64,000 nucleotides of DNA from Epiperipatus broadwayi (taxonomy: Eukaryota; Animalia; Onychophora), in the NCBI GenBank assembly GCA_028023455.1, contig JAQFVV010000010.1, positions 11,656,001 to 11,720,000 of the forward strand, in the 5' to 3' direction. Of the stretch, positions 461 to 63,077 are shown piece after piece; positions within the stretch are counted from its first letter, which is position 1; every line of letters starts with the position of its first letter. Below the pieces are notes generated by a model. That model was not told the origin of the DNA. It ran no database searches and saw only the letters and a program-made list of their open reading frames with translations. The position numbers were made by a program, and so were the translations under genes.

Positions 461-553
461 CATAAGCTTTCTGTGCGCTCTATAAATTAATTATTATTCA
501 ATATTTAATAAAATATACAATATTTAGTAATATATCTATATATTTTTATCTAG

Positions 554-4546: not shown

Positions 4547-4753
<207 letters not shown>

Positions 4754-8016: not shown

Positions 8017-8227
8017 ATATCATATAATACTAAATCATCCATGCACTCACTACTGTTACACAATGCTTTATTCACCACCCTCTTTTACAGTTTACAGCAG
8101 TTGAAGTTAGGAGATATAAAAGTTCTGAAGAAGATTGCTGGGGCAATCGAAACTGTAAAAGAGCGTGGTGAATAAAGCATTGTGTAACAGTAGTCAAGTG
8201 CATGGATGATTTAGTATTATATGATAT
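8017..8227. repeat. Fold-back (~77-bp arms) enclosing a Penelope-type hammerhead core
   Basis: 8017-8093 is the near-exact reverse complement of 8150-8227. The core CTGAAGA-A-GATTGC-TGGG-GCAATC-GAAA lies at 8125-8152. Confidence 0.8.
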
Positions 8228-15560: not shown

Positions 15561-15639
15561 GTTGTTAAAAAGTTTACTAACTGCAGTAATAATGTTAAAT
15601 ATCATCAATAGTAGTCTGTCCAATAAACAGGTCCAGAGA

Positions 15640-29082: not shown

Positions 29083-29189
29083 GTCAAGCATTGGTGGCCG
29101 AGTGGTCAGCACAGTTGCCTTATAAGCAGTTGTTCTGGGTTTGCGGGTTCGCTTCCCATTCGATGCTTTGACACATGAAAAAAAAAAAA
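29083..29189 (+). mobile_element. tRNA-derived short SINE, copy 2
   Basis: A box TGGCCGAGTGG, B box GGTTCGCTTCC and a poly(A) tail. Confidence 0.8.
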
Positions 29190-40894: not shown

Positions 40895-41190
40895 AAATAT
40901 AAGGGATTTGAACTCAGACTTTCAAGTAACCTTCAACTATCCACACTATTTCATACTACTGATACACATGACCACACACATGTAGAAAAGATAAATAATC
41001 ACGAATATACGTACTTCGTGTTGAACCAGCACTCATCAGTTGGCCCAGGTTACCATCTCCCACACATATATATAATCAGTATTTATATTAAGATAGCCAA
41101 ATTTTCATACTTTAATGGACATGCATCAATCTACTCCAAACTCCAACTTTTCAGTCATCCATGTCATCGAAAATCTGATGATAGAATGCC
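40895..41190 (-). mobile_element. HHR-repeat family A partial copy (HHR at 40995-41053, A15.1 changed to G)
   Basis: Minus strand GCCAA-CTGATGA-GTGCTG-GTT-CAACAC-GAAG-TACGTA-TA-TTCGT. Flanks are collinear with the other copies. Confidence 0.85.
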
Positions 41191-42117
41191 CAAATTATTA
41201 TTTTTATTTTCCCAATAACCACCTCTCTAAAATTGGTTTTTCCTCTTAAAAACAATGTAACCTTTTAATATTAGATTTTACAATTTTTTTTTTTTTTTTT
41301 CTACGATAAAAATTTTCAATTTATTTTATTCATGGCATTTCTTATTAATCTTTATTTTTTTCGGATAAAATAAGATTTTGCATTTTAAAGTGTATTTTTA
41401 ATATATTTACAGATTAATTTCAGTGAAGTCAATAAAGCAAATTTTATTAACATTTGTTTCAACTTAGGATTTTTTAATCCGAGTTCATTTTAAGGTAACA
41501 GTTACCTTATTTTATAGCTTATTTTTATCCCTTAAGAATTAGATTTTTATTGTTAAAACAGAATCGCGTAGATGATTGGATTTACGATTTCAATTAGGGA
41601 CTTCATTATAAATCTACCCCCCCCCCCCCAAGTGAATAGTTTAAAATGGTTACTGTTATGTTTTTATTATCAAATTATAATATTTAGTAATTAGTGCTGA
41701 TTATTTTTAAAGATAATTGTAATATTTGGAAAACTAAACCAATCATAATATTTAATTAAAAATGATAATTTATGGCTCCCATTAGTGTTTGTTTACCAAA
41801 TACTCACGCGATATGAAAATTTCTCTTCAACTTTTTCCTTAGACAACAAACAATATGAAGGCATAAAATATTTTTGATAAATAGTAATGTATATTAATAG
41901 AAAAACTTTTTTTTTAAGAAACCGGAAGTATATACTGTATATGTTTGTATCTATGTTTAAACTGGGTTAGAACAATTACCTGTTTTTGTTAGTTTTAAAC
42001 CTGAAACTATTTTATCTTTATTTAACAATAAAGAGTATATATAAATGCGCGAGTATATGTGAATATATATATGCAGAATTGCATAAAATTGAACTTAAAA
42101 CATTTGACTAGTTTTGA

Positions 42118-42216
42118 GTGTAAAAAAAGCGTTGGTGGCTGAGTAGTCAGCACAGCCGCCTTACAATCAGTTGTTCCAGGTTCGCTTCCCGGCCAATTCT
42201 TTGACATCTAAAAAAA
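42118..42216 (+). mobile_element. tRNA-derived short SINE, copy 3
   Basis: TGGCTGAGTAG...GCCGCCTTACAA...GGTTCGCTTCCCGGCC...TTTGAC plus an A-tail. Confidence 0.8.
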
Positions 42217-43059
42217 AAAGACATTTGGGGGGATTACATGCTTTCCATACTATGGCCTTTTTTTTTTTTTTGCCTGATTATATGTATAAACTTAATATTT
42301 TTTCTTTTAGGCAATCACTTCATAATCTGATCCAGATAGTTGTTTAGTGGTTTATAAATGGATATCTAATTATTATTAACTGGAGGATACATTTTATTGG
42401 TTAATCGATCGGCTAAGTGTTAATGTTCCGATTGTAACAAATAATACTACATTCCGAAAGTTACTGAGACCATGAATTATCTTAAAAGAATAGCCAAATA
42501 ATAATCTGAAACAATTATTATATAGACTAGAAGCTGTCATTGTTTGGTTTAAGTAATTTAAAAGTAAACACCTCTGTAAAGTTAAACCTGTTAAATATAA
42601 TCCTAAATAAATTCGCTATTTTGGTAAATAAAATAAATATATCAAGGTAATCGTTTTTCAAATAAGTACGTGTTTTACCCTTCTACTTATATAAATGAAC
42701 CATAATAACAAAAAAAACAACAACAACTAGACTACATAGGCATATAAAGGAATAAAAGCATTTGCTATTTATGAAATTTTTTTGCAAATGTTTCAATTCC
42801 ATTAAATGTGATATGTTGGACTATTTCCATCATCTATGAGTGAATGTTGAATATTGTCACTGTGTATATAGGACACACAAATAGTAATACCTGAAGAAAA
42901 GTGGAGAATAATATTATTCGAAACATTGTGTAATTACTAACCTGTGTTGTCTATTTGTGTGTTATTATTAACAAGTTGTTTGTATTTGGAAAGTTTAAAT
43001 AAAGTTTAAAATTTTCTATATATTCAACATTCATTCATAGATGATTTAAAGTTGTAATT

Positions 43060-43185
43060 ATAAATTTATTTAAACGTACATTGATTACATAAGTAATATT
43101 TACTAAGGCTTTAACTTCAAGAATATGCGTGTAAAAATGTGATATTAGAGACCTCTACAGGTCTTAACCACAAGCTTACGCCTTC
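43060..43185. repeat. Fold-back family C copy without a hairpin
   Basis: Collinear with 38505-38620. It ends at CACAAGCTTA. Confidence 0.7.
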
Positions 43186-43786
43186 TAATAACATACCATC
43201 ATTACAAATCTTCAGACAAATATTTCAATTCCATTGTCATTATTTATTTTAAATTATAGGGAAAGTTTTTTATTCATAATGACTATATCAAGGAATAACA
43301 TACTTGTTCAAAATAGTAGAATTGTGAATTTATATCATATCACAGCAAATTTTAGAAGTATTTATATATGTGGTTAGATTGGCAGGCAAGTAGATAGATA
43401 GTGCATATATGGATATTGTAATGATAAGAGCATGAATAGACAAGACAAAGACCTAAAGAGAATTAGGATATAAAGGCCAATCCATTCACACTCAAAGATA
43501 CAACGTAGTTAGAAAAGGTACAGTTTTTTGCATCCAAACTGGATTTAAATGCAAATTAACCTTGATACAGTTATCAATCCTAGATTTAAATCCACTTTGA
43601 TCCAAATAATAATAATTAAAATTATGTAAATATGTAATGTATGTTTTGATACATTGTACAGGCTTAAACCTGCATTTATATATGTAATATATGCAGGATT
43701 CGAACTCAGATTTTCACATGACCCACTACTCTCAGTGCCATCTCATATTGCTGACCCACCTGATCACACACATGTTGAAAAGATAA

Positions 43787-43845
43787 ATAATCACTAATAT
43801 ACATATTTCATGCTAAACCAGCAATCATCAGTTGGTCTAGATTAC
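43787..43845 (-). ncRNA. Type I hammerhead ribozyme (family A)
   Basis: ACCAA-CTGATGA-TTGCTG-GTT-TAGCAT-GAAA-TATGTA-TA-TTAGT. Core intact, with one mismatch each in helices I and II. Confidence 0.75.
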
Positions 43846-44269
43846 TATCCTCACACATATATATAATCAGTGCTCAGCTTTATATTAAGATAGCCAATCT
43901 TCATACTTTAATGGACAGGCTTCAAACTATTCCAACTCACAACTCTTCAGCCTTCCATTTCATTGAAAATCTGATGATGGAACGTTCAAAGCCCTTGTTA
44001 GTGCCAAGATTGTCATCCTACCCATGTTGACATATTAGTCATTCTGACCTCTCATGTCCAGGAGAATAATCCATTTATATGTACATATGCGAGGGATGGG
44101 CAGACCTTTTACACACTATTTATATAAATTAATACATTGTACAGGCTTAAACCTGCATTTATATATGTAATATATGCAGGATTCGAACTCAGGCTTTCAT
44201 ACGACCTACTACTCTCAGTGCCATCTCATATTGCTGACCCACCTGATCACACACATGTTGAAAAGATAA

Positions 44270-44328
44270 ATAATCACCAATATACGTATTTCAGGCTAAA
44301 CCAGCAATCATCAGTTGGTCTAGATTAC
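44270..44328 (-). ncRNA. Type I hammerhead ribozyme (family A)
   Basis: GTAATC-TAG-ACCAA-CTGATGA-TTGCTG-GTT-TAGCCT-GAAA-TACGTA-TA-TTGGT-GATTAT. Perfect ATACGTAT palindrome, base of helix II mismatched. Confidence 0.78.
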
Positions 44329-45469
44329 TATCCTCACACATTTGATAATCTAATAAAATATTTCATAATGTAAATATTAGCTTTTTGTAATTTCTTACAA
44401 ATATATTCTTACATATGTGTGTGTATGTGTTTCGTTTGATTCTACCATGAAATTCCTTTTGAGTGCTTAGACCAATCTGAATAATTCGTAGTGAATTATA
44501 TTTCACACACCTCCATTCATCTCAACTATAGAAAAAAAAATCATGATTCAAAATATGTGTGAGGCAAATTAAGTCAGTTTATTCTATATAATAAATACAT
44601 CATTTAATCTTAACTAAATAAAAAATCCGAAGTCAGATTTAAATAAAAATCAATTAATAAATTTTATTACACATAGATATATGTATATAAAAATAAAACA
44701 TATAAATGAATGCTCTCAACCCCCCCCCCCTAATATTAGCAAACAAAAATAATTAGTTGCAAAGTAAATTAATTAAGAAATTGTTTGTGCTGGAGAATCT
44801 AAATATATATTACCATAGAAAAACAAACGTGTGTGTGTGTCAAGATAATATATAATGTGGATACGTTATGAATTAACGTTGAGAAATCTGATTATCCTGA
44901 TAAAGCTTTGTAAGTTATGCCTAAATATAATAAAAATTAATAAGCGTGCTTGATAAATTCTGGTTGAAGTAATTAATCATTCGGTCTTTAAAATGTATAA
45001 TAAATTATGCATAAATAAGCAAGCTAATACATCTAAAAACATTTAAGAATAATGGTGGCATTTTCTAGAACTGTCCCATATATATAATATTACGGTAACG
45101 GCTCTTATTCAACGATATCTATATATGGGGGAGGAGTTCTTTACTGTCTTCTTGCTGAATTTCCTTTTGTTATATCTGCTTAAAGAAAATCCATGTATCG
45201 TTATTTTATATCTATTTTTTTTTTCAATAAATAAATAAAAATCCATTAGAACTTAAAGGAATATGCTTTCTCAAAAATACTATTTATAGATTTTAACAGT
45301 ATAATAGTAATAATACTAGTTAGAAGTATGTATTCAGATTAAAAAACTAATACTAATCAGATTTTCCATATGTCACATATCACTACACATCAATCTGTTC
45401 TAAAAAAAAATTAATGTATGTGACATTATAAAAATTTTTAACTAAAAACAAAACAAAAAAAAACATACT

Positions 45470-45552
45470 ACTTTTTTTTCTCTCATATGTCATAGCATCA
45501 GCCGGGAAGCGAACCTGCTAACACGGGACCTTTCAACCACCAATGCTTGACA
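45470..45552 (-). mobile_element. tRNA-derived short SINE, internally deleted copy 4
   Basis: Retains the GTCAAGCATTGGTGG 5' end, the GGTTCGCTTCCCGGC B box and the A-tail. Confidence 0.7.
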
Positions 45553-45714
45553 AAATCATACTACTTTACTGCCTTTTATTCTATTCTTCGCAAATTCATT
45601 TTTAACTTGAGAGCTGAAGAAAATTAATAAAGATACAAATAATTTTTTTTAAAAAGAATAGTCATTTTATTTCTTCTTGTGATATATGATTTTTTTTTCT
45701 ACAGTACAAACTTT

Positions 45715-46022
45715 TCCATACCTGCACTCCAGTATGTAATGTATAGGGCGTTCGAACTCAGCCTTTCACACGACCCTCAACTATTATCTCACACTGCTGA
45801 CACACTTGATCTCAAACATATCGAAAAGAAAAATAATCACCAATATCCGTATTTCGCGTTAAAACCAAGCACTCGTCAGTTGGTCCAGATTATCATCTCC
45901 ACACATATATACAATCAATGCTCAGCTTATATTAAGATAGCCAATCTTCATACTTTAATGGACAGGTTTCAATCCACTCCACCCCACAACTCTTCAGCCG
46001 TCCATTTCATTGAAAATCTATG
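45715..46022 (-). mobile_element. HHR-repeat family A partial copy
   Basis: Collinear with the 43.7-44.0 kb copy, including the B-box-like GAGTTCGAAC and the HHR. Confidence 0.85.
45833..45893 (-). ncRNA. Type I hammerhead ribozyme (family A), best-preserved core
   Basis: ATAATC-TGG-ACCAA-CTGACGA-GTGCTTGGTTTTAACGC-GAAA-TACGGA-TA-TTGGT-GATTAT. All core nucleotides and the G10.1-C11.1 pair are present. Predicted AUA cleavage between 45844 and 45843. Confidence 0.82.
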
Positions 46023-46653
46023 AATTAATTTCTAATAATGATAGCCAGAATGATATAGTGTAGAGTATATTATTGCCTGGATAATACATATGTATGACTG
46101 GATTAGCTTGAAATTAGATTTTGAAGATTTAACGAGATCTCTTAATAAAACAGATAAATTATCATGATATAATGGATTCGTTTTTCTGCAGTTCATCAGT
46201 TTAATCAGTTAAGTAGAGCTCTATATTTTACTGAAGTTTATAACAAAAGTTCAAAGAAAAGTGAATAATAATTGAAGATTAAAGGAACTTTTTTTTAATG
46301 CCACTTACTAATAAAAATCGATTAGCTGAAGTCCCTTTAAACTGATGATAATGTTTTTAATGATTCCATGAAGTGTGACGACCTTTTAGATAGCAATTTT
46401 GTACAGGTGGTGGTGTTGATAAAGTAAGTAGTTTGTGAGGCCCAGTACTGCAGGCAGAAAACATTTTTAATTACTACATTTTTTTATGTTGATTACCAAT
46501 TATCCATTTAAAGCTATAATTAATTTCTAAGAATTTCAAGTAAATTAATAACTTTGGGTTTATGTCACTATTTTCAAGCAATTGACATAAACAAAAAAAA
46601 TATAGTTACTTTGGAATTCAATCTCCTGTACGTTTTTAGTGTTCTATAATGCT

Positions 46654-46767
46654 TTTTTTTCCATGTGTCATAGCATCGGCCGGGAGGCGAATCCGCAACA
46701 ACCGTCTGCAACTAACTGCTTGCTTGCAAGGCGGCTGCGCTGATCTCTCGGCTAACAACACTTGACT
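46654..46767 (-). mobile_element. tRNA-derived short SINE, copy 5
   Basis: Reverse complement of the same consensus, with a small internal duplication. Confidence 0.75.
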
Positions 46768-48160
46768 AGAATGCTTTTTTGAAGTGATTTTCCAGAGCAA
46801 TTCGATTACATGTTTATAAATAGTTCTAAATAATAAATATTTAAAAATTAAAAAATAATAAATTATACATTACCTTAAAATAAAAAGCCATGCAATGCCT
46901 TTAAAAGAAACACATTTTTCCTTTTTCAATTCTGTTTTAATTAAAAAAAGTTACACTTTTGAGAATAGAACAATAATGCATGCACACAGTGTGCATGAAT
47001 AAGAGGTGCCTTTATGCAAGATAAATTTTAATACCCCCTTCCCCCATTTTATGAAATAAAATTTGTAAACTAAAAGACATTTTTTCCCAACATTGTTGCA
47101 AGAAAAACTTGAAAATATGGCTTTAGTCATTTAATGTGTTGGTAAACACTTTACTGTATTTTATTCATTTGTTTCTATAAAATAATTCCGGAAAATAAAA
47201 CACAAACTAAAATAAAACTATGTGTTAAAAAAAAAATTTTGAAACAATAATTAAATAATATCTTAAAACAAAAATAGTTACTTAATAAATAGTCAAAATA
47301 AGAATCATAGATCACATGACCTATTCTCTTAAGCTTGTAAGTTATAAACAATGAGGATTTTAAATGCTTTCTCTGGCTAAGCATTTATCACAAAGCTTGT
47401 TGAGGAATTGGCAATCCTCATTTATTTACTTAATAAATTTGAAATTAAGATTTAATATTATTTTTTGGAGAATCTTGCGAAATTGCTAATAGCATTGGAA
47501 ACATCTGCGAATAAGATATTATTTTTAAATATTCAAGTGTTTTTATATTTAAATGAACCATCACACCCACTCATGAAAACCTTACACTGCTTCCCTCCAC
47601 TTCTTGGGCTGGCTCTACTATATTATATAAGTGATTCTTTGCTTCTAAATTCCATCCCATACAGTGAGAGAAAAAAAGAGCCCATCTTGTCTCCATTATT
47701 TTTTCTGAATCAATATTTAGATCAATTTTAACCAGCAAGTCAATAATTGATTAAAAATAGTTCTTGTTTGATTCAAACCCATTCAAAATGTCTTATGCAA
47801 AAACTTATTCATGTTTTTTATTAACAAAGTAAAAAAATATACTATTATTTAATTTTTATGTGGCATATATATATAATCCAATATTTAATTTTTTTTCCCA
47901 TATATAACTTTTATGTTTATTAGGACCACCAAACTAAGTCAATTTTAAATAACATGGCTGATATAACTCTTACATTCCATTAACACCATATTAAAAAGCT
48001 CTTTGTTTTAAAAATCCATTAATTACTTAAAATAGTTTCATTTATTTTCATTCAATAATAAAATATTTACACTATTATTTTATTTTTTAAAGCTTATTAA
48101 TAACTAAATTCTATTATATATTTTAATTATAAATTTTATTAAAAGCACATTAATATATTA

Positions 48161-48363
48161 AATAATATTTACTAAGGCTGTAACCTTAGGAATAAGCGTA
48201 TGAAAAATTCGAAGGTAGGGACCTCTACAGGTCTTAAACACAAGCTTATGCTCTTTCCCTCTTTTCTTCATAGCATAAGCTTGTGTTTAAGACCTGTAGA
48301 GGTCCCTACCTTCGAATTTTTCAGACGCTTATTCCTAAGGTTACAGCCTTAGTAAATATTATT
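48161..48363. repeat. Near-perfect 92-bp-arm palindrome of fold-back family C
   Basis: 48161-48252 pairs with 48272-48363, with one mismatch seen and a 19-nt pyrimidine-rich loop. Confidence 0.9.
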
Positions 48364-49159
48364 ATATATTTTATTATATAATTTGAGAATTAGGGATTTA
48401 GACAAAATTTATTTAAGTGAAGAAATTTTAACTTTTTAAACTTAAATTTTTTATTTAACATATTTTTATGAGCAATTAAAAGGCTTTGTATTTTAATTTG
48501 TTTATTTATAGATTATATCAGATAACTATTAAAAAATTTCAAACATTTGGTTTGTTCCACTAGATATATTTTTTAGACTTTGTTAATAATGCAATCATTT
48601 AGGGATTTTATTATAATGAAGACAATTTTATAAAATAATAGTATTACTGTGAAAATTGCTAAGAATTAAATATGTTGGCATGCAATATCTTTTTAAAAAA
48701 TAAGTTTTTTACTTACTCTGTTTGTCTTAGATTTGAACTGTAGTGTGGATTATGTATCAATTATTAATTTTTTAGTTAGAGAACAAACTTGAGTCCACAT
48801 CCAAAGAAAATCACTTTAGTAAAATGTATAAAAAGATAATATACCATATAAAAAAGAATAACATTATTAAAAATAGGAAAAGCTATTTAGTGAAATGTGT
48901 AAAAAGATAATATGACATAATACAAAAGGAGGAAAATATCATTGATACTAAAAAAAGTTTCACACAAGACAGCTTTGGAATCAATCCTAAGAAATGACAT
49001 TTCAGAGTCAGCCATGTTACCAGTACTCTAAACTGAATATGACAGCTAAATCCTGTAAAATATTGTTGATAAATATAATTTTATCATGCGAATTACTGTA
49101 ATTATGAGGCAATATTTTTAAAATAAAATTTTAAAATAAATTATTAATAATAAATCATT

Positions 49160-49660
49160 ACATTTTATACATTTAAATAAAAGTGAATGAGAATTCTAAA
49201 CCTTTTCATTTATATATAAATTTTATTAATCATGGCAACAAAATGGTGTCAGCCTACTCAGACTGTGCAATGGTAGAGAATATATGAAATATATTTCAAG
49301 GCTTGAGCAATTGTCTCAAAAGTTTAAGTAAAGAAATATTTCTCTTACATTTAAATAAAAAATATTTACAATCAGAATGTGTTTTCAACAATAAAGTGAT
49401 TCAGAAATCTAAATATTTACATACAAGTTTTATTAATCATTATGACAAAATACCATCGACTTGTTTGTTTTTGCACAATGAGAAGCGTATATATGTAGTA
49501 TATTACAAGCTTGAGGTTTGGGCAATTGTCAAAATAAGTTTAAGTAAAGAAGAATTTATTTTATATTTAAATAAAAAAATATTTACACTCAGAATGTACT
49601 TCTAAGAATGAAGTGATTCAAAAATGTAAACATTTTTATTTACATATAAATTTTATTAAT
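49160..49660. repeat. Diverged tandem repeat with a ~210-bp period (about 2.3 copies)
   Basis: The blocks ATTTAAATAAAA...AAGTGA...TTTTATTAAT recur near 49170, 49350-49430 and 49565-49660. Confidence 0.5.
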
Positions 49661-50159
49661 TATCTTGGTGTCTTGGCACCCCCATGATAAAGCACTTTTG
49701 TGCCCTACCCAAACTGCACACCTTCACATGTCAGCCTTGCACACATATTTTTTCTTTTACTACTTAAAATCCTTATTGCGAAATTCTAATCTTTAAATTT
49801 CATTCTAAATATATATGTATAAATAAAAAGTAATTGTCCACATATACATCTCATTCACACGCGTTAATGTAAAAATATATTAAAATGAAATATACTTCTA
49901 CATTTTTTAGATTTTATTTTTAACATAGAGAAAACAAAATATTGATACTCTGACTAAAATCCAAAATTGACAGAAATTATTATGCTAATACATGACTCTC
50001 CAAATAAATATAACGAAAATTTCATAATATATATTTTGAGCTATTTCTAAGATAATATATATATTTATAATCATTATAATAATACAGATGTTAATCTATG
50101 CTTACAATATATATATAGAGAGAGAAAGAGACACAAAAAAATAGACAGGTAAATAGATC

Positions 50160-50629
<470 letters not shown>

Positions 50630-51059
50630 TTTTTTTCAGTTTAAAACGATTTTTATTTAATTAAAAAAATAATTTAAATGAAATTAGAAAGAATTATTGC
50701 AATAATTAAAAATTAAAAATGGGTGCTCAGTTAAGAGGAAGATATTGCAATTTTTGAAAAATAAAATACTTTTTGTTTTTTAACACAATGATTATTTTAA
50801 AATTTCATTGTCTGAGGATTTTTCTTCTATTTGATTCTTCTTTAATTTAAAAATAAAATTCATCAACAGTTCCATTATTAAACAAAAACCAAAAAACATT
50901 CATTATTCAAACACCTTTTAAATAACTGTTTCCACTAATAATACTTAGTTAACCTAATTATTTTTTTAGACACGTTAAATTAGTCTTAAATAATTAATGT
51001 AATCAATCGTATAATATGTAAAACTGAATCGCGATATTTAAAACGAATATTCTGCAAAT

Positions 51060-51460
51060 GTTTAATTATCAGTGTAGATACATGTGAAAAACGTAAGATC
51101 CCAGAGATACACATTTCGTGCTGAACCAACACTCATCAATTGACTCACACCACAATCTCTTACACATATCTTTAACATTATTCAGTATATATAGATAGGG
51201 AATTACTACAGTTTAATTGATGTGTCAAATTTACTGTCCTGACAACTTAGATACAAAGCACTTAATGAAAATATATTAATATTTTTTATTAGTCATTCAT
51301 TAGAATAGTCAATAGAGATTATCCATTTAATGAATAATATTTCTGTAGTGAAATTGTCTCTACACGACCGCTTTTAACATCTTATGAAGGAGTGTGATCA
51401 TATACATATAGTCAAAGACATGTGAAAAAGATGTAAGATCTCCCAATATGCACATTTCAT
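51060..51460 (-). mobile_element. Diverged HHR-repeat family A-related copy with two HHR remnants ~340 bp apart
   Basis: TTGATGA-GTGTTG-GTT-CAGCAC-GAAA-TGTGTA-TC at ~51100-51146. A second remnant lacking helix II lies at ~51430-51460. Confidence 0.6.
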
Positions 51461-52741
51461 CAATGGACCCATACAAAAAAATCAAAATTTAAACATTAAA
51501 TAATCTTATAACTGGGACACTGTATCGTAGATTGAACAGAGACATATTTTATCTCCACCAAAGACTATATCATTACTGTCCTTCATTAAAAAATTATTTG
51601 TCCCAAATTTACAATTAGATAGACAATCTCACAAGTTTTAAGATAGTAATTAAGCATCAGTAAATTATACATACACATACAAAGTGTTTGTAATAAATAG
51701 GAAAATTAAATTTTGTACATTAGTTGAAAAGATAGGCTGAAAAATTTACCAAAAAAATATCGCGCATGCTTTCCTCATCTCTGCCCCCTCATGCTGCAAA
51801 TTTGGTTTTCCTAATTTAAAAGAAAAAGTAATTTACTTGGAAACATGAAAAAAAAGCAAACAGCTTTTAAATAATTAAAACTGGGTATATATATATAAAT
51901 TGATATTACTATAAATTTTATGACTCAGTAAATTTTACTTGGGCAGATTTTATTTATATAAACAAAAGAATTTCCTTAAAATGAAACTCAAAATTATTCT
52001 TTTTTTAAATATATTTTTCATGACATTTGAAAAAATATTTCAAATTTTGTCACAAAAAGGTATAGCACTTAAATCACTATTGTTACAAAAATAGCACGTC
52101 TTTGGATATATGGCGTGCTTGAATACTTCTAACTTTATGTAAGGAGAAATCATTTTGTTATAAGAAAAATTCCAATTTATTTGAGATAAGAATAGGAACA
52201 TTGAATACCAAGTAACAAAGATAAAAAGTATAATTGAAATTTGGTTATCTGAGCCACGTCTATATTTATTTCAAAATTGTCAATTATTTATATTTATTTA
52301 AAAGTAGTTATTTAAAGCTAATATTTAGAACCATGTTTAGCTTTCAATACTATAAATATTTGAAATACAGGCACTCTTCACATACCTGGAGCCCAGTTGT
52401 AAATATAGGGGATTTGAACTCGGACTTTCAAGCACCCTTCAACTATCCACACTATCTCATACCACTGATAACATGACTACACACATGTAGAAAAGAGAAA
52501 TCACCAATATACATATTTTGTGCTGAACCAGCATTCATCATTTAGTCCAGATTATCATCTCCCACACACATATATATAATCAGTGCTCAGCATGGGATTT
52601 GAGCTTTCCATCATCAGATTTCAATGGTATGAATGGCTGAAGAGTTGGGGGTTGAAGTAGATTGAAACCTACCCATTAAAGTATGAGGGTTTTCTGTCTT
52701 AATATAAACTGAGCACTGATTATATATGTGTGTGAGAGATG

Positions 52742-52800
52742 ATAATCTGGACCAACTGATGAGTGCTGATTCAGCAAGAAATATGGATATTGGTGATTAT
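52742..52800 (+). ncRNA. Type I hammerhead ribozyme (family A)
   Basis: ATAATC-TGG-ACCAA-CTGATGA-GTGCTG-ATT-CAGCAA-GAAA-TATGGA-TA-TTGGT-GATTAT. Only C11.1 changed to A. Predicted cut after 52789. Confidence 0.8.
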
Positions 52801-52837
52801 TTATCTTTTTTACGTGTGTGTGGTCATATGTATCAGT

Positions 52838-52892
52838 GGCATGAGATGGTGTGGATAGTTGAAGGGTGCTTGAAAGTTTGAGTTCAAATTCT
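52838..52892 (+). promoter_or_regulatory. Pol III type-2-like internal promoter motifs in family A
   Basis: A-box-like TGGCATGAGATGG (52838-50) and B-box-like GAGTTCAAAT (~52880-89). The 43.7 and 44.2 kb copies read GAGTTCGAATCC on the HHR strand. Confidence 0.5.
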
Positions 52893-53216
52893 TTATATTT
52901 ATATTTGGGCTCCAGGTATGTGAAGAGTGCCTGTATTTCAAATATTTACACATTAAGCCTGTATCCTGCCCATCTCTCTTCTCTGTATTTAAATGGATAA
53001 GGTCCTATATGTGAGGAGTCAGAGTGAGTTAAGGTCAACATGGGCGTGGCAATAATATTGGCGTCAGCATGGGATTTGAGTTTTCCATCATCAGATTTCA
53101 ATGGTATGGATGGCTGAAGAGTTGGAGGTTGGAGTAGATTGAAGTCTGTCCATTAAAGTATGAGGATTTGCTATCTTAATATAAACTGAGCACTGATTAT
53201 ATATATATGGGAGATG

Positions 53217-53275
53217 ATAATCTGGATCAACTGATGAGTGCTGGATCAGTACAAAATATGTATATTGATGATTAT
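53217..53275 (+). ncRNA. Type I hammerhead ribozyme (family A), G12 changed to A, probably inactive
   Basis: ATCAA-CTGATGA-GTGCTG-GAT-CAGTAC-AAAA-TATGTA-TA-TTGAT. Helix I is compensated (ATCAA/TTGAT). Confidence 0.75.
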
Positions 53276-54466
53276 TTATTTTTTTTGCATGTGTGGGGTC
53301 ATATGTATCAGTGGTATAAGATAGTGTGGATAGTTGAAGGGTGCTTAAAAGTCTGAGTTCAAATCCCCTATATTTACTTTCAATACTATTTATATATTAT
53401 TATTAACTTTCATTACAACTCGTTTAGCACAATGATTATTTTACTTAAGTACAGATATTTTATCTTCTGTAAATGATCTTAAAAAAAATTGAAATATAGA
53501 TTGTTTGTCCTCTTAGATTAGTCTTTTGTTATTATTGTTTTTTTTTAGACCAACACCTGCTTATTTTTGTACTGCAAAATCCTTATTTTTTTTAAAGATT
53601 ATAGGTGAGTTCATTTAAATTAAATAATAGATCTCCCTATACTTTGCTAACCAAAGTTTAACCTTCCTTTCCTCTGGTAGTATTTTATATTTTCTCTTAA
53701 GTCCAGACATGACCCGTTAAATCTACAATTATAAAATCATTCTATCTGCATTAGTATGTCTTTTTTGCTTTTTCTTTTTTAAAAAAAAAACCTGCTATCT
53801 ATTATTATCACAAAAGTATAAACAAAACAAAAAAAAGCTATCTTTAATTTTTCTCCTTTTATATTTATCACATTTTTAATAAAATTTGTTATCATGTTTT
53901 TATTGTCCTACAATCCATATATATATATTCTTGTTTTATTCTTTCATCTCTACATATATATCATGTGGTCCAAAATTATTAATATTAGCATATGTAAATA
54001 TTTTTCTGAAGTGTATTAAAATTAAGATAATTACTTCAGAAACAGTATTATTATTTGCATAATCATGAAATCCATTTTATTTACAATCTGCATAATATAC
54101 ATAGAGATATTTCAGTCCTCCCCTACTCTAGAAATAATACTTTCAATCACATATATAGTCCATTAATCTAGCTGCTTTCCTGTCTATGTATCTCTTCCTA
54201 GGAAACATTTTTCTTCCTCCTTCTATAGTTTGTTTTTCTTCTTATAGCAGTCTAGAAATAACACTATCTTTCTCAGACTCAATTATTTGATCCATACTGT
54301 GATCATTTATTATCTAGTTTTTGTCGTTTTTTCTTAGCTAATGAAGTATTTTTTGTTCCACATTCTTCATATGAGACTTTTCTTATCCTTTGCCAATTTA
54401 TTCTCAAAAACATTAACATATTGTATCTCATTTAGATGAGGACATATATGATTTACGTCTTAGCAG

Positions 54467-55209
54467 AACAGGCAAAACTCTCTATTATGTATTGCCACTC
54501 AGTGCAAGCCAGAGTAATCAATGGATGCCATAAGGCTTGTGCATAAAATCCTCATCTAATGCCTACTCATCCAACATCCCCAGACTAGTTTTTGGCTTGT
54601 GGCCTTTGTCAGTAAGGATCCTTGGATCTGGGAGCACTGTATCTAAATCTTAGGATCTAATGCAGGGGTCCCCAACCTTTTTGCACTTAAGAGCACATTC
54701 TATAATACTGGTCAGGTGGCGGGCACCATTTATTTTTTTCAACCAGATGGCAGGCACCATTTATTTTTTCAAAGTAAATTTATAGTTGGATATTGTTAAT
54801 AATACACAAAATGTACAAAAAAATATTTATTTCAAAAATAAAATTTTAACATATAATTAATGTTTATATTTTTACAACTGTAAAAGTATAGTATGCCCTA
54901 CAATTTTATTACAATATAATACAATAATTTATAACAAATTTTAAAAATTAAATTTATTTGTATCAGATAAATAATTTTTTATCTTGTTCGGATAGCAGCG
55001 GGCACACATAAAATGGGCATAGGGTTGTGGACCCCTGATCTAATGTAACCTTCCAGAAACCACCTTTTATCTCTACTTAATTACAAAACTATGAGTCTTA
55101 AATTGAAATCACTATAATATTATCAACCAAAACTCATTAGCTTATATAGTCATATAGGTCTGAACTCAATTCAGTACCTATACATATTGGTGATCATGTG
55201 ATGCTTAAT
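54467..55209 (-). mobile_element. HHR-repeat family B copy (HHR decayed) interrupted by a hAT MITE
   Basis: GGCAAAACTCTC end at ~54471 and GTGATCATGTGATG end at ~55192. HHR remnant CTGACAA...AAAA-CTAG-TC-TGGGGA. Degenerate TSD GTCTTA(G/T)CAG. Confidence 0.75.
54663..55037. mobile_element. hAT-superfamily MITE
   Basis: TIRs CAGGGGTCCCCAACC and GGTTGTGGACCCCTG. 8-bp TSD ATCTAATG at 54655-62 and 55038-45. Confidence 0.9.
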
Positions 55210-55399
55210 GTCTTATCAGTCATAGTTGCCTAGACAAAGTTTGCAATATCACTTCTGTCATCAATTTTTTTTTTTAAATATTGTTTATCCACGTGCTATC
55301 TGCAATTTTACATTTTTCATAATCATTAAATGTTTCATATGTAGTTGGAAACAACTCAGTGAGAACAAAAATGTCAGCACATTAATAATTCGACAGATG

Positions 55400-58300
55400 T
55401 CTTGTTAGTTGCTGTTTATGGAGCAAAGTTTACAGGAACATAGTATGAACTAGTATTTCTGGAACAGACTTAAAACAAGTTTTGTTCAATGTAGGCTTCA
55501 AATGTTGAATGGCATTCTCAGCTATGCCATTACTCTCGGGGTGATAAGGTGAAGTAAGAATGTACCATCTCCCTTTATTATCTAAATAATCCACAAATTG
55601 CTGAGAGGCAAAATCTGTTCCATTATTAATTATAATAATCTCCAGATAACAATATATAGCAAAAATTCTCTCAGTGCTTAAATATTACATTTTGCATTCA
55701 TATTCTTTATTATCTTTTATTCAGTCCAATGAGAAAAACACATCAAAAACTATATATCCATGAACTGGTCTGCATCATCTAAACATTTACAAAGTTTCAT
55801 AGACTTAGGACACGCTTTAAATTTTTTAGATGGCAATTTAGTGGTTGACAAACAATGTGCATTTCTTTACTATTTATTCTATTTTACCACACACAACTCC
55901 AGGATGACCTCAATGAAGTAAAGTAAGTGCATGGTTCTGGCTTTCTGGAAGTAGGACTACATGGTCAGTCATTAATAGACAATTATTGCTAGATGATAAA
56001 CTATGTTGTAAATTCCAAATGAGCTTTACAACTTATGTTTTCCTTGCCAGCCATATTTTATTCATTTCAGTAATTAGATATAATTTTAGTCTTGTTTAAT
56101 CTACTTAACAATTATTAAGTTAAATAGAGTCCATAGCGTCTATAAAATTTATCTCACTAATGCCATATTACTTTTCTTTAGTGTCAGGTAGAAGCGATAA
56201 AACATCCACATGTCCAATCTGCTTTTCTGGCTTATACATTAATTCATAATCATATCCCTAGTAATATACTTATTCAGAACAACATGTATTGACTTATGCA
56301 TTCAGGATTTTTTTCCGATCCCAAATATTCCTAGAGGCAGATGATGATCTATGCAGATTTAAAATTTTCAGTCATAAATATAGTAATGAAATTTTTTTAT
56401 AGGAAAAATAACTGCTAATATTTCTTTGTTAATATGGAAGTAGTTTTTTTCAACTGCTTTCACTTCCATGGCATGGATGAAAAATTATGGCTCCAACACC
56501 ATATTCTGATGCATAATCCATATCACTACAGTAGTGAGTCATAAGATCAGTTCCAACATTGTTTCTTTTTAAATAATTGATACAAGGGTGCTAGCAAATG
56601 AGATTTCTTTCTTTAAAGAAACTCTAATAATAGTTTAACAATCTTAAAAATGCTTGCAATTCTTTCACATTTCTTAATCTCAAAGCATTTATTATGCAAG
56701 GCAAAACTCTCCATACAGTAGTTCCACCCTGTGCCAATGAGAGTAATCATTATGTGCTAGTATAAGAGATGGTGATCATGTGATGTTTAGCATTTATTAT
56801 GACTGTCACTTTATATGAATTTGGATGTTTTCCATTTTTATTTATAATGTTTCCAAGAAACTTTATCTCATTTGTAGACCAGATGCACTTCAACGTATTT
56901 ATCTTGGCGCCTATATTATCCAATTTTGAACAAAGGGCATTTACTAGCCTTTCTTATTCCAGCTCCAATTCTGATATATTCAAAATATAATCTAAGTATG
57001 GAATGATGTTGTCCATGCTATGAAAAAGTGTATGCATTTTTTCTTGGAAAATATTTAATTTTACCATAATTCCATATGGAAATTTATTACATGTATAATT
57101 TCCCAAATTTACTATTCCTTCAATTGCATGAATTTGGTGGAAGGCAAGTTTAAGGAATACGGTTTAAGGTCTTTTTGGGGGGAAGTACAAAGCTTTTTCA
57201 ATGAAGTCAATACTTCAGTATACTAGGAACTGATAGGCAACTATATTAATAAATTTATTTAATGCAGTAGTCTCCACACAATCTAGGATTTACATCTGGT
57301 TTTATAATAACTACAGGTGTAACCTAGAATGAATCTTCTATCAATGTTAGTATTCCCTTTTGCACCATCTTGCTGATAGTTTTTCCTACTTTTTTTTTTC
57401 AGTGGGAAATGAAACTTTATGTGGTTTACAGATAATGGATTGCACTTCCTTTATTAAGTTAATGCCAACTGACCATGTTTTAACTCCACTGGTCCAACCT
57501 TAAACAGCCCAGGGTATTTCTTTTGTACCTTGTTTGCAATTGAATTTTATGATGTTTTTATGGTTTCCTACAGGGTGAAAGTAATTCCATCCAAATGGTT
57601 AACTAAAATTTTTGTTAACATTATACAATAGAAGAAATTTAATTCTTGAATTTAGTTTTACAGATAATGTTCTCTTTCACACATATAATTTCACTGATGT
57701 TAATATCTGTTGTGACAATATTCATTTTTGCAAGCATCATTTTCTTTCAATGACCTCTGTTGACTTTTAGACAGTCTTTATTATGATATCAATGATAGCC
57801 TGAACCATTAAATTTTTGATCACATATTCACATCAAGAAGTTTGTGATCATTGTGTGTACAATAATACTTCTTCATGTTATAATTACTACTCACTCTCCT
57901 TTCCCCAGATTTGTAGTCTGTCATTTGCTTAATTTTGACACTTCTTTCTTTACTGTGATAGATGTATGATAAATATCCTCTCTTTTTACAAATAGTGCAT
58001 GTTTTACTTTTATGTTCACAGTTTTTACTTAAACAGCCACTTTTACCATAATAACAACAAGTACAACATATTTTATTCGATTAGGGTCCAGTATATTTGT
58101 ATTTGTTTTCTGTACTGAGAGAGAGATATTTGAATCAGCTGTTGTGATAATGAAAATTCTGAAGTGTTGTCAAGCATGGCTTCTTGTGTGATGCATTTCT
58201 CTATCACATGTTTATAGTTGAGGTTGGGTTCGCTCAACAATATTTTTCTGAAATTTGAATCCAACATGCCATATAGAAAATAGTTCTAACAAGATATCAT

Positions 58301-58625
58301 TAATTTCCAAGTTGAAATCACCATATTTTGCAAAATTCCTCAATGCTATGTCATAATCTCCATATTTTTCATGAGGTAATTGTTTTCTGCTTTTTAGTTT
58401 CAATCATGCTACCCATTTTGTTATTTTTGGAGTGAAATATCCATTTAATTTGTCAGTCAGTTCATGATATAAAACTTTTTTGGATATTATAGGGTCATAC
58501 AATTCATTTGCTAGTTGTACAACATCTTGTCCTGCAAGCCATAAGAATGTAGACACTTTCAATCATTTCTCATCTTTTTTTTTCTGAGCTTTTACAGAAT
58601 TTTCCCACAAAGCACCAATCTTCAT
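55400..58625 (-). mobile_element. Decayed Ty3/Gypsy gag-pol remnant
   Basis: gag SRKQLPHEKYGDYDIALRNFAK and FRKILLSEPNL. RT TPVVIIKPDVNPRLCGDY, KFPYGI...IFQEKM and PYLDYIL. Integrase H*GHPGV. Many stops. Confidence 0.75.
56697..56788 (-). mobile_element. 92-bp internally deleted (HHR-less) family B derivative
   Basis: Both family-B termini are present. 13-bp TSD AGCATTTATTATG at 56684-96 and 56789-801. Confidence 0.85.
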
Positions 58626-59017
58626 AAACAAAGGCAAAACTTTCCATACAGTAGTGCCACCCTGTGCCAAACAGAGTAATCAATGGATGCCAGAAGGCTT
58701 GTGCATAAAATCCCTATCTAGTGCCTACTCATCCAATATCACCAGACTGGTTTCTGGCTTGTGGCCATCATCAGTGAGGAGCCTTGGATCTGAGAGCACT
58801 GCACCTAGATCTTAGGATCTAATGCAACAAGCCAGAAACTAGTCTGGGGATATTGGATGAGTAGGCACTAGATAGGGATTTTATGCACAAGCCTTCTGGC
58901 ATCCATTGATTACTCTGTTTGGCACAGGGTGGGACTACTGTATGGAGAGTTTTGCCTTTGTTTACAACAATTATGTGCTAATATAGAAATGGTGATCATG
59001 TGATGTTTAGTGGTTAA
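58626..59017 (-). mobile_element. HHR-repeat family B insertion with an internal inverted duplication
   Basis: 13-bp TSD CACCAATCTTCAT at 58613-25 and 59018-30. 58826-58965 is an inverted near-identical copy of ~58626-58762. Confidence 0.88.
58731..58790 (-). ncRNA. Type I hammerhead ribozyme (family B), core intact
   Basis: GATCCAA-GGC-TCCTCA-CTGATGA-TGGC-CACAA-GCCA-GAAA-CCAG-TC-TGGTGA-TA-TTGGAT, with a GUC site. Confidence 0.8.
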
Positions 59018-60354
59018 CACCAATCTTCATGATAGATAATTTTATATTATTATATAATGATGTCACTATTCATGATTTAAAGGTAATGGTATTATACACA
59101 ATCACTACTATTCTAGTGAATCACTATTATTTTCATAAAGAAGGTATGGTTGAACTGTTGAAAATGACATTCTGATATTGTTTGCATAGATTCTTCTTGA
59201 ACTATTGATTCCATCCATTCCACTATATTCTACATTCTAATATTGTTTGCATGGATTCTTCTTGAATTATTGATTGCCTCCATTCAACCATGTCCTGAGG
59301 ATGTTTATTAAATACCTATTGAGAAAGCATCAATCACTTTAAATAAATTAACACAAATTTAGTAACAAAACAATTTATTTAACAATAATAATAATGAAAT
59401 GAATAATGTGGACTCCATAAGAACCAAATATAGTCTCTTATTAATTCTCTAATTGCATATTTCATTTCTCACATATACAGGATATTACAAGCAATATTAT
59501 GTGTTTTTTCTCGTTAAGTGATATATGTGTATATTCTTTAAGGAACAATAACACTTCTAACAATTCAATATTTTATTTTAGCCGACTAACTGTTGTGTTA
59601 ACAACTTATCAATATTCTCTCCAAAGTTTCTTTATGCTTTCTTAGCACACACACTTTTCATACACCAATTTACTATCTCTCTGCCAATCCTAGTTTTAGA
59701 TTGAGTTTTTTAAATGCGAGTCCTATTTTTTTTTTTTACATATAAATGGCTAATTTACATAAGTCTGTTTATTATACTTGCAAATTATTAATAAGAATAT
59801 GTAGATTTTTTTAAGAATATATTAAAATTAAGATAATTAATTTAGAAACAATCTGTCCATATTTACATAATTATGAAATCCATTTTATTTACAGTTTATA
59901 TAATATATGCATAGATATTCTATGTATATAAAGATAGTGTCTGATTGTTTATTTGAAAAATATACTGACAGCAGTACACTTTTCTAGCTTATAAAAAATA
60001 GTCAGTAATGACTTCATTACTGCAAATAGATATAAGCACTCGGAAAATGAATAAATACTTAGATGGCAAGTGCATCAGTTTATACAGTCACATAACACTA
60101 ATTTTTAGCTAATTGCCCGTATTTTGATACTAGAATTTGTATTGTTTTTATTCATTTACTTTTCATTTTCTCATCGAAGTCAGTGATTTCACATTTAACC
60201 AATGAGTTTGTATAAGTGTATGTTGATTGACATATGATGACGGACATTTGTAAATTAATCTTTAATTTTTTGAATAGGATGGAAAGTGGATTAAAAAAAT
60301 TGAATAATAATAATAATAAGATTCACTATATAAAAAGCCTGTGTTTCAGTTATT

Positions 60355-60790
60355 ACATAGTAGAGATGTCTGTCCATCCCTTCTATATGTATTAAATGGA
60401 TTATGTCCTATACATGAGGGGTCAGATTGACCTATGGTCAATATGGGTGTGACAAGAATCTGGGTCTCAGGGTGGCTTTTAATCATTCCATCATCAGATT
60501 TTCAGTTGGATGAACGGTTGAAGAGTTAGAGTGTGGAGTGGATTGAAGCCTGTCCATTAAAGTATGAAGATTGGCTATCTTAATATATATCTGAGCACTT
60601 ATAGCATATATGTGTAGAAATGGTAATCTGGACCAACTGATGATTTCTGGTTTAGCATGAAATGCGTATATTGGTGATTATTTATCTTTTCGACATATAT
60701 GTGTTCAAGTGTATCAGTGTTATGAGATAGAGTGAAGAGTGGTGGGTGGTGTGAAAGTCTGTGATCATATACCCTATACATTATATAAAA
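60355..60790 (+). mobile_element. HHR-repeat family A near-monomer copy (HHR at 60623-60681)
   Basis: GTAATC-TGG-ACCAA-CTGATGA-TTTCTG-GTT-TAGCAT-GAAA-TGCGTA-TA-TTGGT-GATTAT. Flanks are collinear with 52950-53370. Confidence 0.85.
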
Positions 60791-61229
60791 AGTTGTAAAA
60801 GAAAAAACAAATTTAATGTAAAATAAAAAATCCAATCAGATTTTCAATATTTCATCTAGCTTTTTGACACCCCAAGTTAAACAAATTCTTGCTTGCTGAT
60901 AAAGTCGACAAAGGCAAAAGGAACACACACAGGGTGCCATGCTATATGAAACGCCAAAATAGGTGTATAATTCTTTTAAAGAAAAATAATATAACATAAA
61001 TAATTGAGACTTTTTGTAGCAACAAAAGCAAAAAAAAAAACATTTTTTGTAATATTTTGCGATTTTTTTTTATATAATTAAATACTGTACTTAAAAACTA
61101 ATTTATAATTATTTATCAATAAAAAAATTTGATGAGATATTAATTTATATAGATATATATTTAATCTTATATATTTTGTTGCCTTACCTAGGATGAAAAC
61201 AGACAAAACACTATATGCATTTTGTCTGT

Positions 61230-62546: not shown

Positions 62547-62646
62547 TTTTTTTCTCATGTGTCATAGCATCAGCCGGGAAGCGAACCCGCTAACCTGGGA
62601 CAACTGCTTGTAAAGCAGCTGTCGCTGACCTCTCAACCACCAATGA
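62547..62646 (-). mobile_element. tRNA-derived short SINE, copy 6
   Basis: Reverse complement of the SINE consensus, with a T-run (A-tail) at 62547-53. Confidence 0.75.
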
Positions 62647-63077
62647 TTTTCTTTTAAAAAAGTAACATAAAACAAAATTTTTTATTAAAGAATATCATTA
62701 CAAGAAATCACAGCAACATTTTGCTCTGTAAAGGACTTTGTAATTAGTACATTTATTGCCATATTAAGCAGAAAGTTTTATCTCAGACAGACCCATAGTC
62801 AAAACTATCTAGCTATCAAATATTGCTTAGTAATAGATATGTAGCTACATTTAGCTATAGAGAAAGCATGAATGTAAAACTACTGAAACTCATCACCATA
62901 TAACTAAGTTGAAAAACAATTGAATGACTGTTTCTCTTTCATAGTTACTCTATATGACCCCCTCCCCCCATGGTGGGGTCTTTGCTCTGAAATTGAGTAT
63001 TTAAAAGCTGTTTTATGTTAGATTTTATTCTAAATATAGATTATAGTGAATATATAATAAGCATTAAAGTATGTATA

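Follow-up and report, generated by a model that had tools for sequence, protein, structure and literature searches.

In animals, small circular RNAs are produced abundantly from retrozymes. The non-LTR retrozymes were defined by Cervera & de la Pena (2020; PMC7229834), with metazoan units of 170-400 nt, and self-cleavage and circularisation of related retrozymes have been demonstrated by experiment (PMC7229834); a more recent preprint gives a consensus length range of 51-972 bp (bioRxiv 10.64898/2026.07.22.740005). Retrozymes have been proposed to be derivatives of Penelope-like elements (PLEs) (bioRxiv 10.64898/2026.07.22.740005; Li, Clavereau & Pollet 2026). Among the published marks of PLE insertions are 5' truncation, partial tandems, an inverted 5'-truncated copy alongside and, at one end only, a tail of 30-40 bp (PMC8557442); hammerheads may also simply parasitise PLEs (Craig et al. 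2021, PMC8557442).

The window analysed here is a stretch of 64,000 nt from the onychophoran Epiperipatus broadwayi (contig JAQFVV010000010.1), in which the original prediction placed nine hammerhead motifs, all within one repeat of about 480 nt that we refer to as Family A. Checked one by one, all nine motifs are present at the predicted positions, and, when 3 or fewer mismatches are allowed, the 26-nt core has 6 matches in the window against 0.00 expected. That a single repeat family holds all nine is confirmed by blastn with the unit at 52587-53063, which finds 10 pieces, all of them within 40894-60786, and leaves the rest of the window empty. The features are as follows.

40894..41195, minus strand: single Family A arm, unit ~11-315, with an 'alpha' 3' end at 40894
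40995-41053, minus strand: decayed hammerhead of that arm (A15.1>G; helices I and II contain mismatches)
43646..44349, minus strand: arm of 1.4 head-to-tail units from a divergent subfamily, 3' end near 43650
43787-43845 and 44270-44328, minus strand: hammerhead remnants of that arm, spaced by 483 nt, with U.U at the base of helix II
45700..46015, minus strand: single arm with a hammerhead at 45833-45893 that keeps the invariant core, helix I and helix III
51097..51192, minus strand: short Family A fragment with a dead hammerhead remnant at ~51097-51160 (C3>U, helix I gone)
52341..52353, plus strand: left copy of a 13-bp target-site duplication, CTTTCAATACTAT
52354..52590, minus strand: inverted 5'-truncated arm, unit 123-362, with a 'beta' outer end carrying the 47-nt tail
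~52497-52555, minus strand: dead hammerhead of that arm (C3, G8 and G12 changed)
52587..53376, plus strand: direct arm of 1.66 units (unit 1-477, followed by 1-315) whose outer end is 'alpha'
52742-52800 (11.1 C>A) and 53217-53275 (G12>A), plus strand: hammerhead remnants of that arm
after 52789 and after 53264, plus strand: predicted cleavage sites of that arm
~52814-52902 and ~53290-53376, plus strand: tRNA-like stretches of that arm
53377..53389, plus strand: right copy of the 13-bp target-site duplication
60327..60792, plus strand: 0.95-unit insertion with its flanking duplications, the element itself at 60338-60781, unit ~343 to ~315
60327-60337 and 60782-60792: 11-bp duplication, TATATAAAAAG, around that element
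60623-60681, plus strand: hammerhead remnant of that element

Tandem units in the window are spaced by 483 nt and by 475-477 nt, units inside a single insertion are ~11% diverged, and two of the insertions are flanked by exact target-site duplications (TSDs), of 13 bp and 11 bp. None of the nine motifs (0/9) is itself an intact hammerhead, and on this point the original prediction is corrected: four (those at 40995, ~51100, ~52497 and 53217) are altered at the invariant core positions given above, and the other five (43787, 44270, 45833, 52742 and 60623) keep the core with a defective helix II. Least damaged is the hammerhead at 45833-45893, where the damage to helix II consists of a mismatch plus a 2-nt insertion. 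The window copies are old, CpG-decayed relics that are not expected to cut.

For the ancestral form of the family the assignment to type I is upheld, with CUGAUGA and GAAA boxes and an AUA cleavage triplet. The consensus reduced from the window copies exists in nature as a full 59-mer at three loci (L037, L038 and L041), in which all 19 of the 19 designated pairs are canonical and the invariant core (C3 U4 G5 A6 N7 G8 A9, G12 A13 A14, A15.1-U16.1, H17) is complete, as it likewise is in 41 exact genomic copies. In the 59-mer, helix I is made up of 5 bp, a UGG bulge and a further 6 bp; helix II has 6 bp; and helix III has just 2 bp, with ACGU as its loop, on the 8-nt palindrome AUACGUAU, the "dimer" type of newt and axolotl; helix I is open and helices II and III are closed, giving the type I topology. 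Among 93 distinct copies the designated pairing holds in 94.1% of cells, against 24-53% with the partner slid. The ensemble probabilities in the 59-mer monomer are ~0.42 for helix I, ~0.42 for helix II and 0.04 for helix III, and the cofold of two 59-mers reaches -40.5 kcal/mol, against 2 x -13.3, by way of the palindrome. Because the 2-bp helix III is closed on this palindrome, two units probably must pair as a double hammerhead if cutting after AUA is to be efficient. When the motif is folded in isolation, its minimum free energy (MFE) structure is not the hammerhead (-8.8 kcal/mol) but an alternative hairpin (-13.3 kcal/mol), and the copy at locus L035, whose helix I extension is a variant one, has an MFE z-score of only -0.56 relative to shuffles. 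The dominant young variant, present in 1,196 exact copies, has G.U instead of G-C at 10.1-11.1, which may weaken catalysis.

The Rfam Hammerhead_1 model (RF00163) had no hit at the gathering score or at E<=10, whether in the window, in positions 40000-61500 (searched at E<=10), in a near-perfect copy or in a whole unit; the model does match GAAAC...GUC-type hammerheads of other families in the same genome, and it misses Family A because helices I and III differ. Covariation across genomic copies is not above that of shuffles (0.115 versus 0.111, with 73/500 shuffles as high), as is to be expected of copies that decay neutrally from one master. The original prediction had named a lack of covariation as a refutation, and formally it is lacking, but for the dead-on-arrival copies of a young repeat this carries no information. 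Conservation is 0.918 both in the hammerhead block and in the rest of the unit, with decay uniform along the unit, and with no excess of covariation there is thus no sign of selection in the genomic copies.

The Family A unit has a GC content of 36% and a period of 475-483 nt in the window; most of the full-length units sampled measure 464-487 nt and one measures 445 nt, and each has one hammerhead, the units being arranged head to tail. Terminal direct repeats (LTRs) beyond the tandem units themselves are absent, and the repeat lacks coding capacity, as predicted, the median longest ATG-ORF being 51 aa even in trimerised copies. Counting the consensus across the genome confirmed a large family: the 44-nt core is found exactly 41 times (control 0), the 5.6-Gb assembly contains 8,422 near-intact cores when four transition-prone sites are left free (control 0), and first-look candidates number 10,966. 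The total in the assembly probably exceeds tens of thousands of copies. Contigs from 24 public runs of organisms coded A-K, no run being on record as RNA, also contain parts of Family A, and the family is therefore common to related species; joints in these contigs that go back 476-478 nt fit circles or tandem DNA alike. Contig depth in the public runs is higher over the hammerhead bins, an observation that we do not count as evidence. Exact-pattern scans of metagenome and viral contig collections yielded no Family A match.

Exact TSDs of at least 9 bp (9-18 bp) flank 18 of 54 sampled insertions and none of 49 controls, and the insertions are products of retrotransposition. The 3' ends fall into two groups, at unit 308-322 and at 355-366, both finishing in ATATTTA and lying 47 nt apart, and the 5' ends are scattered; A-rich or simple-repeat tails are absent from the insertion ends. 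Most copies are dispersed. No array among the 54 insertions exceeds 2.8 units, and arms extend to 2.76 units; these multi-unit arms imply a template longer than one unit, either multimeric or circular. Clusters with arms on opposite strands are always (22/22) in the order (-)(+), that is, with their 3' ends outward, as are neighbouring pairs on opposite strands in an independent list drawn from the whole genome (11/11), and each of the 17 two-arm insertions with both ends classified (17/17) has one end of each kind. Units within one insertion, in the same or the opposite arm, are 0.90 identical, versus 0.861 between loci, indicating that both arms come from one event. Arm 5' ends at the cleavage site were considered as a trace of cutting in vivo and are not significant: three arms start within 3 nt of the site, two of them in the same composite structure, with ~1.2 expected, and there are other 5' hot spots.

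Family A is thus supported as the dispersed, ~480-nt non-coding retroelement with a type I hammerhead, and candidate non-LTR retrozyme, that was originally predicted; the basis for reading it as a retrozyme is the topology, the ancestral core, the ORF-less period of 477-483 nt, the TSD-flanked dispersal and the presence of PLEs in the genome. We consider it quite probable that Family A is a very high-copy, non-autonomous non-LTR retrozyme, the observed motif, copy number, TSDs, termini and arm architecture being joined in this reading to presumed cleavage and circularisation and a presumed PLE enzyme. In the proposed life cycle, multimeric transcripts would be cut to unit length, the units would probably be ligated into circles by the host tRNA ligase, and the RNA would then be reverse-transcribed at a staggered break in the chromosome. 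In the insertions, copying begins in every case at one or other of the two ATATTTA-ending sites 47 nt apart and proceeds for a variable distance of up to 2.76 units; very often the break is primed from both ends, giving two arms with 3' ends outward and a 47-nt tail on one of them. If integration proceeds in this PLE-like manner, one of the two ATATTTA sites at which reverse transcription would start is the one at the 3' end of the tRNA-like fold.

A PLE reverse transcriptase/GIY-YIG endonuclease is the most likely mobiliser, because the insertion anatomy, the most informative of the results, is the published signature of PLE integration. The genome has 10,243 GIY-YIG candidates, of which 150 were scored and all 150 were above the cut-off, and tandem PLE units with open frames of 875-901 aa. 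Comparison of Family A with 33 PLE loci (30 GIY-YIG loci and three intact ones), a sample of the many PLE families in the genome, revealed no shared terminus or similarity, just incidental Family A insertions and matches of 13-15 nt. The two-ended insertion anatomy is not described in the retrozyme papers cited here, and neither the tail nor inverted arms are mentioned in the 2026 preprint (bioRxiv 10.64898/2026.07.22.740005). We suggest tentatively, and with slightly less than even confidence, that Family A may be the first insertion-level evidence of animal retrozyme integration by Penelope-like machinery, with two defined start sites, an obligatory one-of-each arrangement and a circle as template; earlier support for a tie between PLEs and retrozymes consisted of co-occurrence or sequence kinship, to which Family A would add insertion structure.

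The tRNA-like stretch raises the alternative of a tRNA-derived SINE of the Sm-alpha type, with an internal Pol III promoter, copied by a LINE, inverted by twin priming and carrying the hammerhead as an accessory. Sm-alpha itself joins a tRNA-derived part and a hammerhead (PMC2770079), LINE reverse transcriptases occur in the window, a B-box-like GAGTTCRAATCC lies ~90 nt 3' of the cleavage site, and ARAGORN at thresholds of 80-90% draws a cloverleaf in 13/31 copies, always at unit ~220-327 and ending at the 'alpha' terminus, with a T4 run just upstream in 27/29 copies. However, ARAGORN at default thresholds makes no tRNA call and Rfam no tRNA match, the B box is present within one mismatch in only 7/29 copies, and the tRNA-like part stands at the 3' end of the insertion, whereas in SINEs it is the 5' head. 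We regard this alternative as unlikely, since Family A insertions also lack an A-rich or simple-repeat tail and their strict one-of-each ends and multi-unit arms are not features of LINE twin-priming. A Pol III transcript running from the tRNA-like promoter to the T4 after the hammerhead is a model weakened by the poor boxes and by a second T4 run, at unit ~30 in 18/29 copies, that would halt the polymerase ahead of the hammerhead.

A different possibility is that the hammerhead is a non-functional passenger from a PLE terminus, with cleavage and circles playing no part in the spread of the family. The lack of a selection signal in genomic copies, the competing fold of the isolated motif, insertion ends that never coincide with the cleavage site and the view of Craig et al. 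that hammerheads may merely parasitise PLEs all agree with this, as does the G.U at 10.1-11.1 in the most successful recent variant, although both changes in that variant preserve pairing (C>U opposite G). It is nevertheless quite improbable, given that a complete core and three helices persist in the ancestral form of so large a family, that related retrozymes have been shown by experiment to cleave and to form circles (PMC7229834) and that a circular template easily explains arms of more than one unit. A plain satellite or segmental repeat that multiplied as DNA and bore a chance hammerhead-like motif could account for the head-to-tail units and for a motif to which Rfam is blind, but is highly implausible: it is already contradicted by the TSDs and by fixed 3' termini with variable 5' ends, copies are dispersed, arrays in the 54 sampled insertions do not go beyond 2.8 units, and the 59-nt motif obeys every hammerhead rule.

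As a retrozyme, Family A is no new kind of element: the suggestion that it may be undescribed holds for Family A alone and fails for its class, which is well described (PMC7229834; bioRxiv 10.64898/2026.07.22.740005). Being large and inserted with a clean, recurrent anatomy, it offers a good natural data set on the return of retrozymes to DNA, one that connects a retrozyme with the unusual products of PLE integration and argues for a multimeric or circular template. For annotation, the standard Rfam hammerhead model misses the family entirely despite its size.

Among known systems, the axolotl and newt non-LTR retrozymes resemble Family A in their non-coding units of a few hundred nt with one type I hammerhead each, and in a helix III of 1-2 bp whose loop is palindromic, which implies that two molecules act together; the U.U at the helix II base of axolotl HHR_Amex2 is also found in one subfamily in the window. 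With metazoan non-LTR retrozymes it shares a low GC content (36%), head-to-tail units, TSDs above the 4 bp of plant retrozymes, a PLE-bearing genome and, probably, tens of thousands of copies. It departs from them in a unit of 477-483 nt, above the 170-400 nt of PMC7229834 and within the 51-972 bp of the 2026 preprint, in being mostly dispersed rather than in long tandems, and in its AUA cleavage triplet and tRNA-like stretch. Like Sm-alpha and Sj-alpha it is a short interspersed non-coding retroelement with a hammerhead and a tRNA-related stretch, high copy number and multimers; unlike them, its tRNA likeness is weak and placed at the 3' end of the insertion, and its hammerhead sequence and helix III type differ, the schistosome-based Rfam model missing it. 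PLEs differ from Family A in having an ORF, a reported tail of 30-40 bp rather than 47 nt, and a minimal hammerhead variant in place of a full-size type I; PLEs and their non-autonomous derivatives share with it 5' truncation, partial tandems, an inverted 5'-truncated neighbour and an extension at one end.

A blastn search of the whole window with the repeat unit at 52587-53063 recovers ten pieces of a single repeat, Family A, extending from 40894 to 60786, and alignment of these pieces yields the nine hammerhead-like motifs of the original prediction, each at its predicted position. The 26-nt hammerhead core has six matches in the window with at most 3 mismatches (0.00 expected). Two tandem spacings are confirmed, one of 483 nt (43646/44129) and one of 475-477 nt (52587/53064), and the description of the repeat as ORF-less is borne out by the absence of a conserved ORF and a median longest ATG-ORF of 51 aa in trimerised copies. 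The GC content of Family A is 36%, versus 28% for the window.

The proposed hammerhead consensus corresponds to a natural sequence: a 44-nt core has 41 exact matches in the 5.6-Gb assembly and its reversed control has 0, and the full 59-mer is found in L037, L038 and L041, three genomic loci outside the window. Under standard hammerhead numbering, the parts of the 59-mer are as follows.

Helix I: ACCAA/UUGGU, then a UGG bulge, then AUAAUC/GAUUAU
Core C3-A9: CUGAUGA
Helix II: GUGCUG/CAGCAC, with G10.1-C11.1
Core G12 A13 A14: present in the 59-mer
Helix III: A15.1-U16.1 plus U-A, enclosing an ACGU loop
Predicted cleavage site: 3' of the AUA triplet, A17

The topology is type I, as assigned originally, and 19 of the 19 designated pairs are canonical. 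In the isolated motif helices I and II have probabilities of ~0.42 each, helix III has a probability of only 0.04 in the monomer 59-mer, and the hammerhead fold (-8.8 kcal/mol) is less stable than an alternative hairpin, which is the minimum-free-energy structure (-13.3 kcal/mol). Cofolding of two copies through the 8-nt palindrome AUACGUAU gives -40.5 kcal/mol, as against -13.3 per single copy. The hammerheads of newt and axolotl retrozymes act as dimers through a weak helix III and palindromic loop (PMC7229834), and Family A similarly has a weak helix III with a palindromic loop. The Rfam Hammerhead_1 search proposed with the prediction leaves Family A unmatched, even for a near-perfect copy at E<=10; since the same model finds four other hammerheads elsewhere in the genome, all of the GAAAC...GUC type, the miss is attributable to differences in helices I and III rather than to a fault of the tool.

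The window copies are degraded, with invariant core bases lost in four of the nine motifs and helix II defective in the other five; the least degraded lies at 45833-45893. Pairing holds in 94.1% of cells over 93 distinct copies, covariation in the helices is no higher than in shuffles, and the majority frequency is 0.918 both in the hammerhead block and in the remainder of the unit. Flat conservation and shuffle-level covariation are expected of dead-on-arrival copies that decay neutrally, and these measures are thus silent on structure, for or against. Transitions at CpG sites are the most frequent changes (CACGAAA to CATGAAA or CACAAAA; TACGTA to TATGTA), which agrees with the depletion of CpG in the window (observed/expected 0.30). 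With four transition-prone sites left free there are 8,422 cores genome-wide, although this and other Family A copy counts are possibly up to three-fold too high, as the numbers of the contigs with matches form three blocks (1-6196, 6197-12392 and 12393-18588) and the 5.6 Gb may represent three haplotype or assembly sets of ~1.9 Gb and 6,196 contigs each. Of these cores, 1,196 are exactly the variant GGUUUAGCAUGAAAUACGUAUA. Since it retains the helix III CpG, this variant owes its two C>U changes to an active master; the two changes preserve pairing as G.U, one of them at 10.1-11.1.

Chained blast matches from the window and 40 further loci define 54 insertions, of which 18 are flanked by exact 9-18 bp target-site duplications, compared with 0 of 49 displaced controls. 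Two of the duplication pairs are in the window.

52341-52353 / 53377-53389: target-site duplication pair
60327-60337 / 60782-60792: target-site duplication pair

The 3' ends of the arms (one-strand stretches of Family A within an insertion) are of two kinds, alpha at unit 308-322, ending ...CCCCTATATTTA, and beta at unit 355-366, ending ...TTCAAATATTTA, with ATATTTA common to both. The 5' ends are dispersed and the arms are 0.1 to 2.76 units long, so that the template must have exceeded one unit; no arm terminates at the predicted cleavage site (unit 203). Adjoining opposite-strand arms are always ordered (-)(+) with their 3' ends outward, in 22 of 22 clusters among the sampled insertions, and the same order recurs in all 11 adjacent pairs of an independent genome-wide list. 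All 17 two-arm insertions with both ends classified (15 + 2) have one alpha and one beta end, placing the 47-nt alpha-beta stretch on one side only. Arm-to-arm junctions mostly overlap by 0-6 nt. Identity between units of one insertion is 0.900 for units of the same arm and 0.899 for units of opposite arms, higher than between loci (0.861, sd 0.032), so both arms derive from one event.

Identical composite inverted structures are also seen at unrelated loci, L036 and L039 (G000:C9:17.63 Mb and C55:4.94 Mb), and further recurring ones at C1:4655049/4655159, C2:15317036/15317157, C21:6883622/6883735 and C27:3941280/3941386. One composite joins arms 115-315 and 201-360 with ATAT microhomology at the joint, and in another the opposite-strand hammerhead cores are separated by only 106-121 nt. 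This recurrence suggests either hot spots for arm junctions or re-mobilisation of already inverted copies.

A B-box-like sequence, GAGTTCRAATCC, lies ~90 nt 3' of the predicted cleavage site. Neither default ARAGORN nor Rfam calls a tRNA in Family A, and at ARAGORN thresholds of 80-90% a cloverleaf appears in 13 of 31 copies, always at unit ~220-327, its 3' end coinciding with the alpha terminus. Schistosome Sm-alpha is a precedent for a hammerhead combined with a tRNA-derived part (PMC2770079). The stretch could be read as a Pol III element, but the box matches are poor and a second T4 run is present. According to a review of retrozymes, these elements appear to be promoterless (PMC7761336).

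Several other features were noted in the window.

15647-17673 (-): LINE-type reverse-transcriptase ORF, RVT_1 E 2e-37
30797-32746 (+): LINE-type reverse-transcriptase ORF, RVT_1 E 5e-31, also zf-RVT
29087-29168 (+): tRNA-Ile(tat), ARAGORN, 82-83 nt
62565-62647 (-): tRNA-Val(tac), ARAGORN, 82-83 nt

Both tRNA calls are longer than usual and could be tRNA-derived repeats, not genes. GC skew swings strongly around 16-36 kb, and a long microsatellite-like array of 8-nt period occupies 50058-50700. A near-perfect palindrome at 48151-48373 (102-nt arms, 96% complementary), with a related flank at 43052-43137, has matches on both strands to the plant MIR9481 model at 70 bits (E 9e-14, below gathering) and resembles a MITE-type foldback, not a microRNA gene. 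A second hammerhead-like motif, at 58735-58780 (-), has CUGAUGA, a 4-bp helix II (UGGC/GCCA) and GAAACCAGUC, and is of the type matched by Hammerhead_1 elsewhere in the genome; it lies within an inverted repeat (58625-58765 / 58824-58964; 141 nt, 96% complementary) with further copies at 54470-54664 and 56698-56760.

Words of a young Family A array are present in 24 public runs from organisms A-K (6-71% of words; no run is recorded as RNA), indicating that the family is common to related species. Four possible-RNA runs give thousands of short contigs, for which no molecule ends are reported and whose joints are compatible with circles or tandems alike. Penelope-like elements (PLEs) are abundant in the genome, which has 10,243 GIY-YIG candidates as well as PLE units in tandem whose open frames span 875-901 aa; a comparison of Family A with 33 PLE loci found no sequence similarity. 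Insertions of PLEs are described as 5'-truncated and partly tandem, accompanied by a neighbouring inverted copy that is itself 5'-truncated, with a tail of 30-40 bp on just one side (Craig et al., PMC8557442). At one locus (L077, G000:C12394:20940000-20949999) an apparently intact PLE stands in partial tandem with a period of ~3.1 kb; its open frames measure 901 and 855+ aa, an inverted 319-aa fragment lies upstream, and the element does not have a canonical CUGANGA...GAAA hammerhead.

Judged by its sequence, Family A fits the definition of a non-LTR retrozyme (PMC7229834); the suggestion that it may be undescribed therefore stands for this family and not for its kind, which is already known. 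Taken together, we think it likely that Family A is a non-LTR retrozyme with PLE-type integration, for which self-cleavage and circles are predicted. Its unit length is within the 51-972 bp range of retrozymes in a 2026 preprint (bioRxiv 10.64898/2026.07.22.740005), where retrozymes are linked to PLEs because the two co-occur and are related in sequence, and where neither a tail nor inverted arms are mentioned. The insertion anatomy of Family A, in tying a retrozyme to PLE-type integration, goes beyond the published retrozyme accounts compared here.
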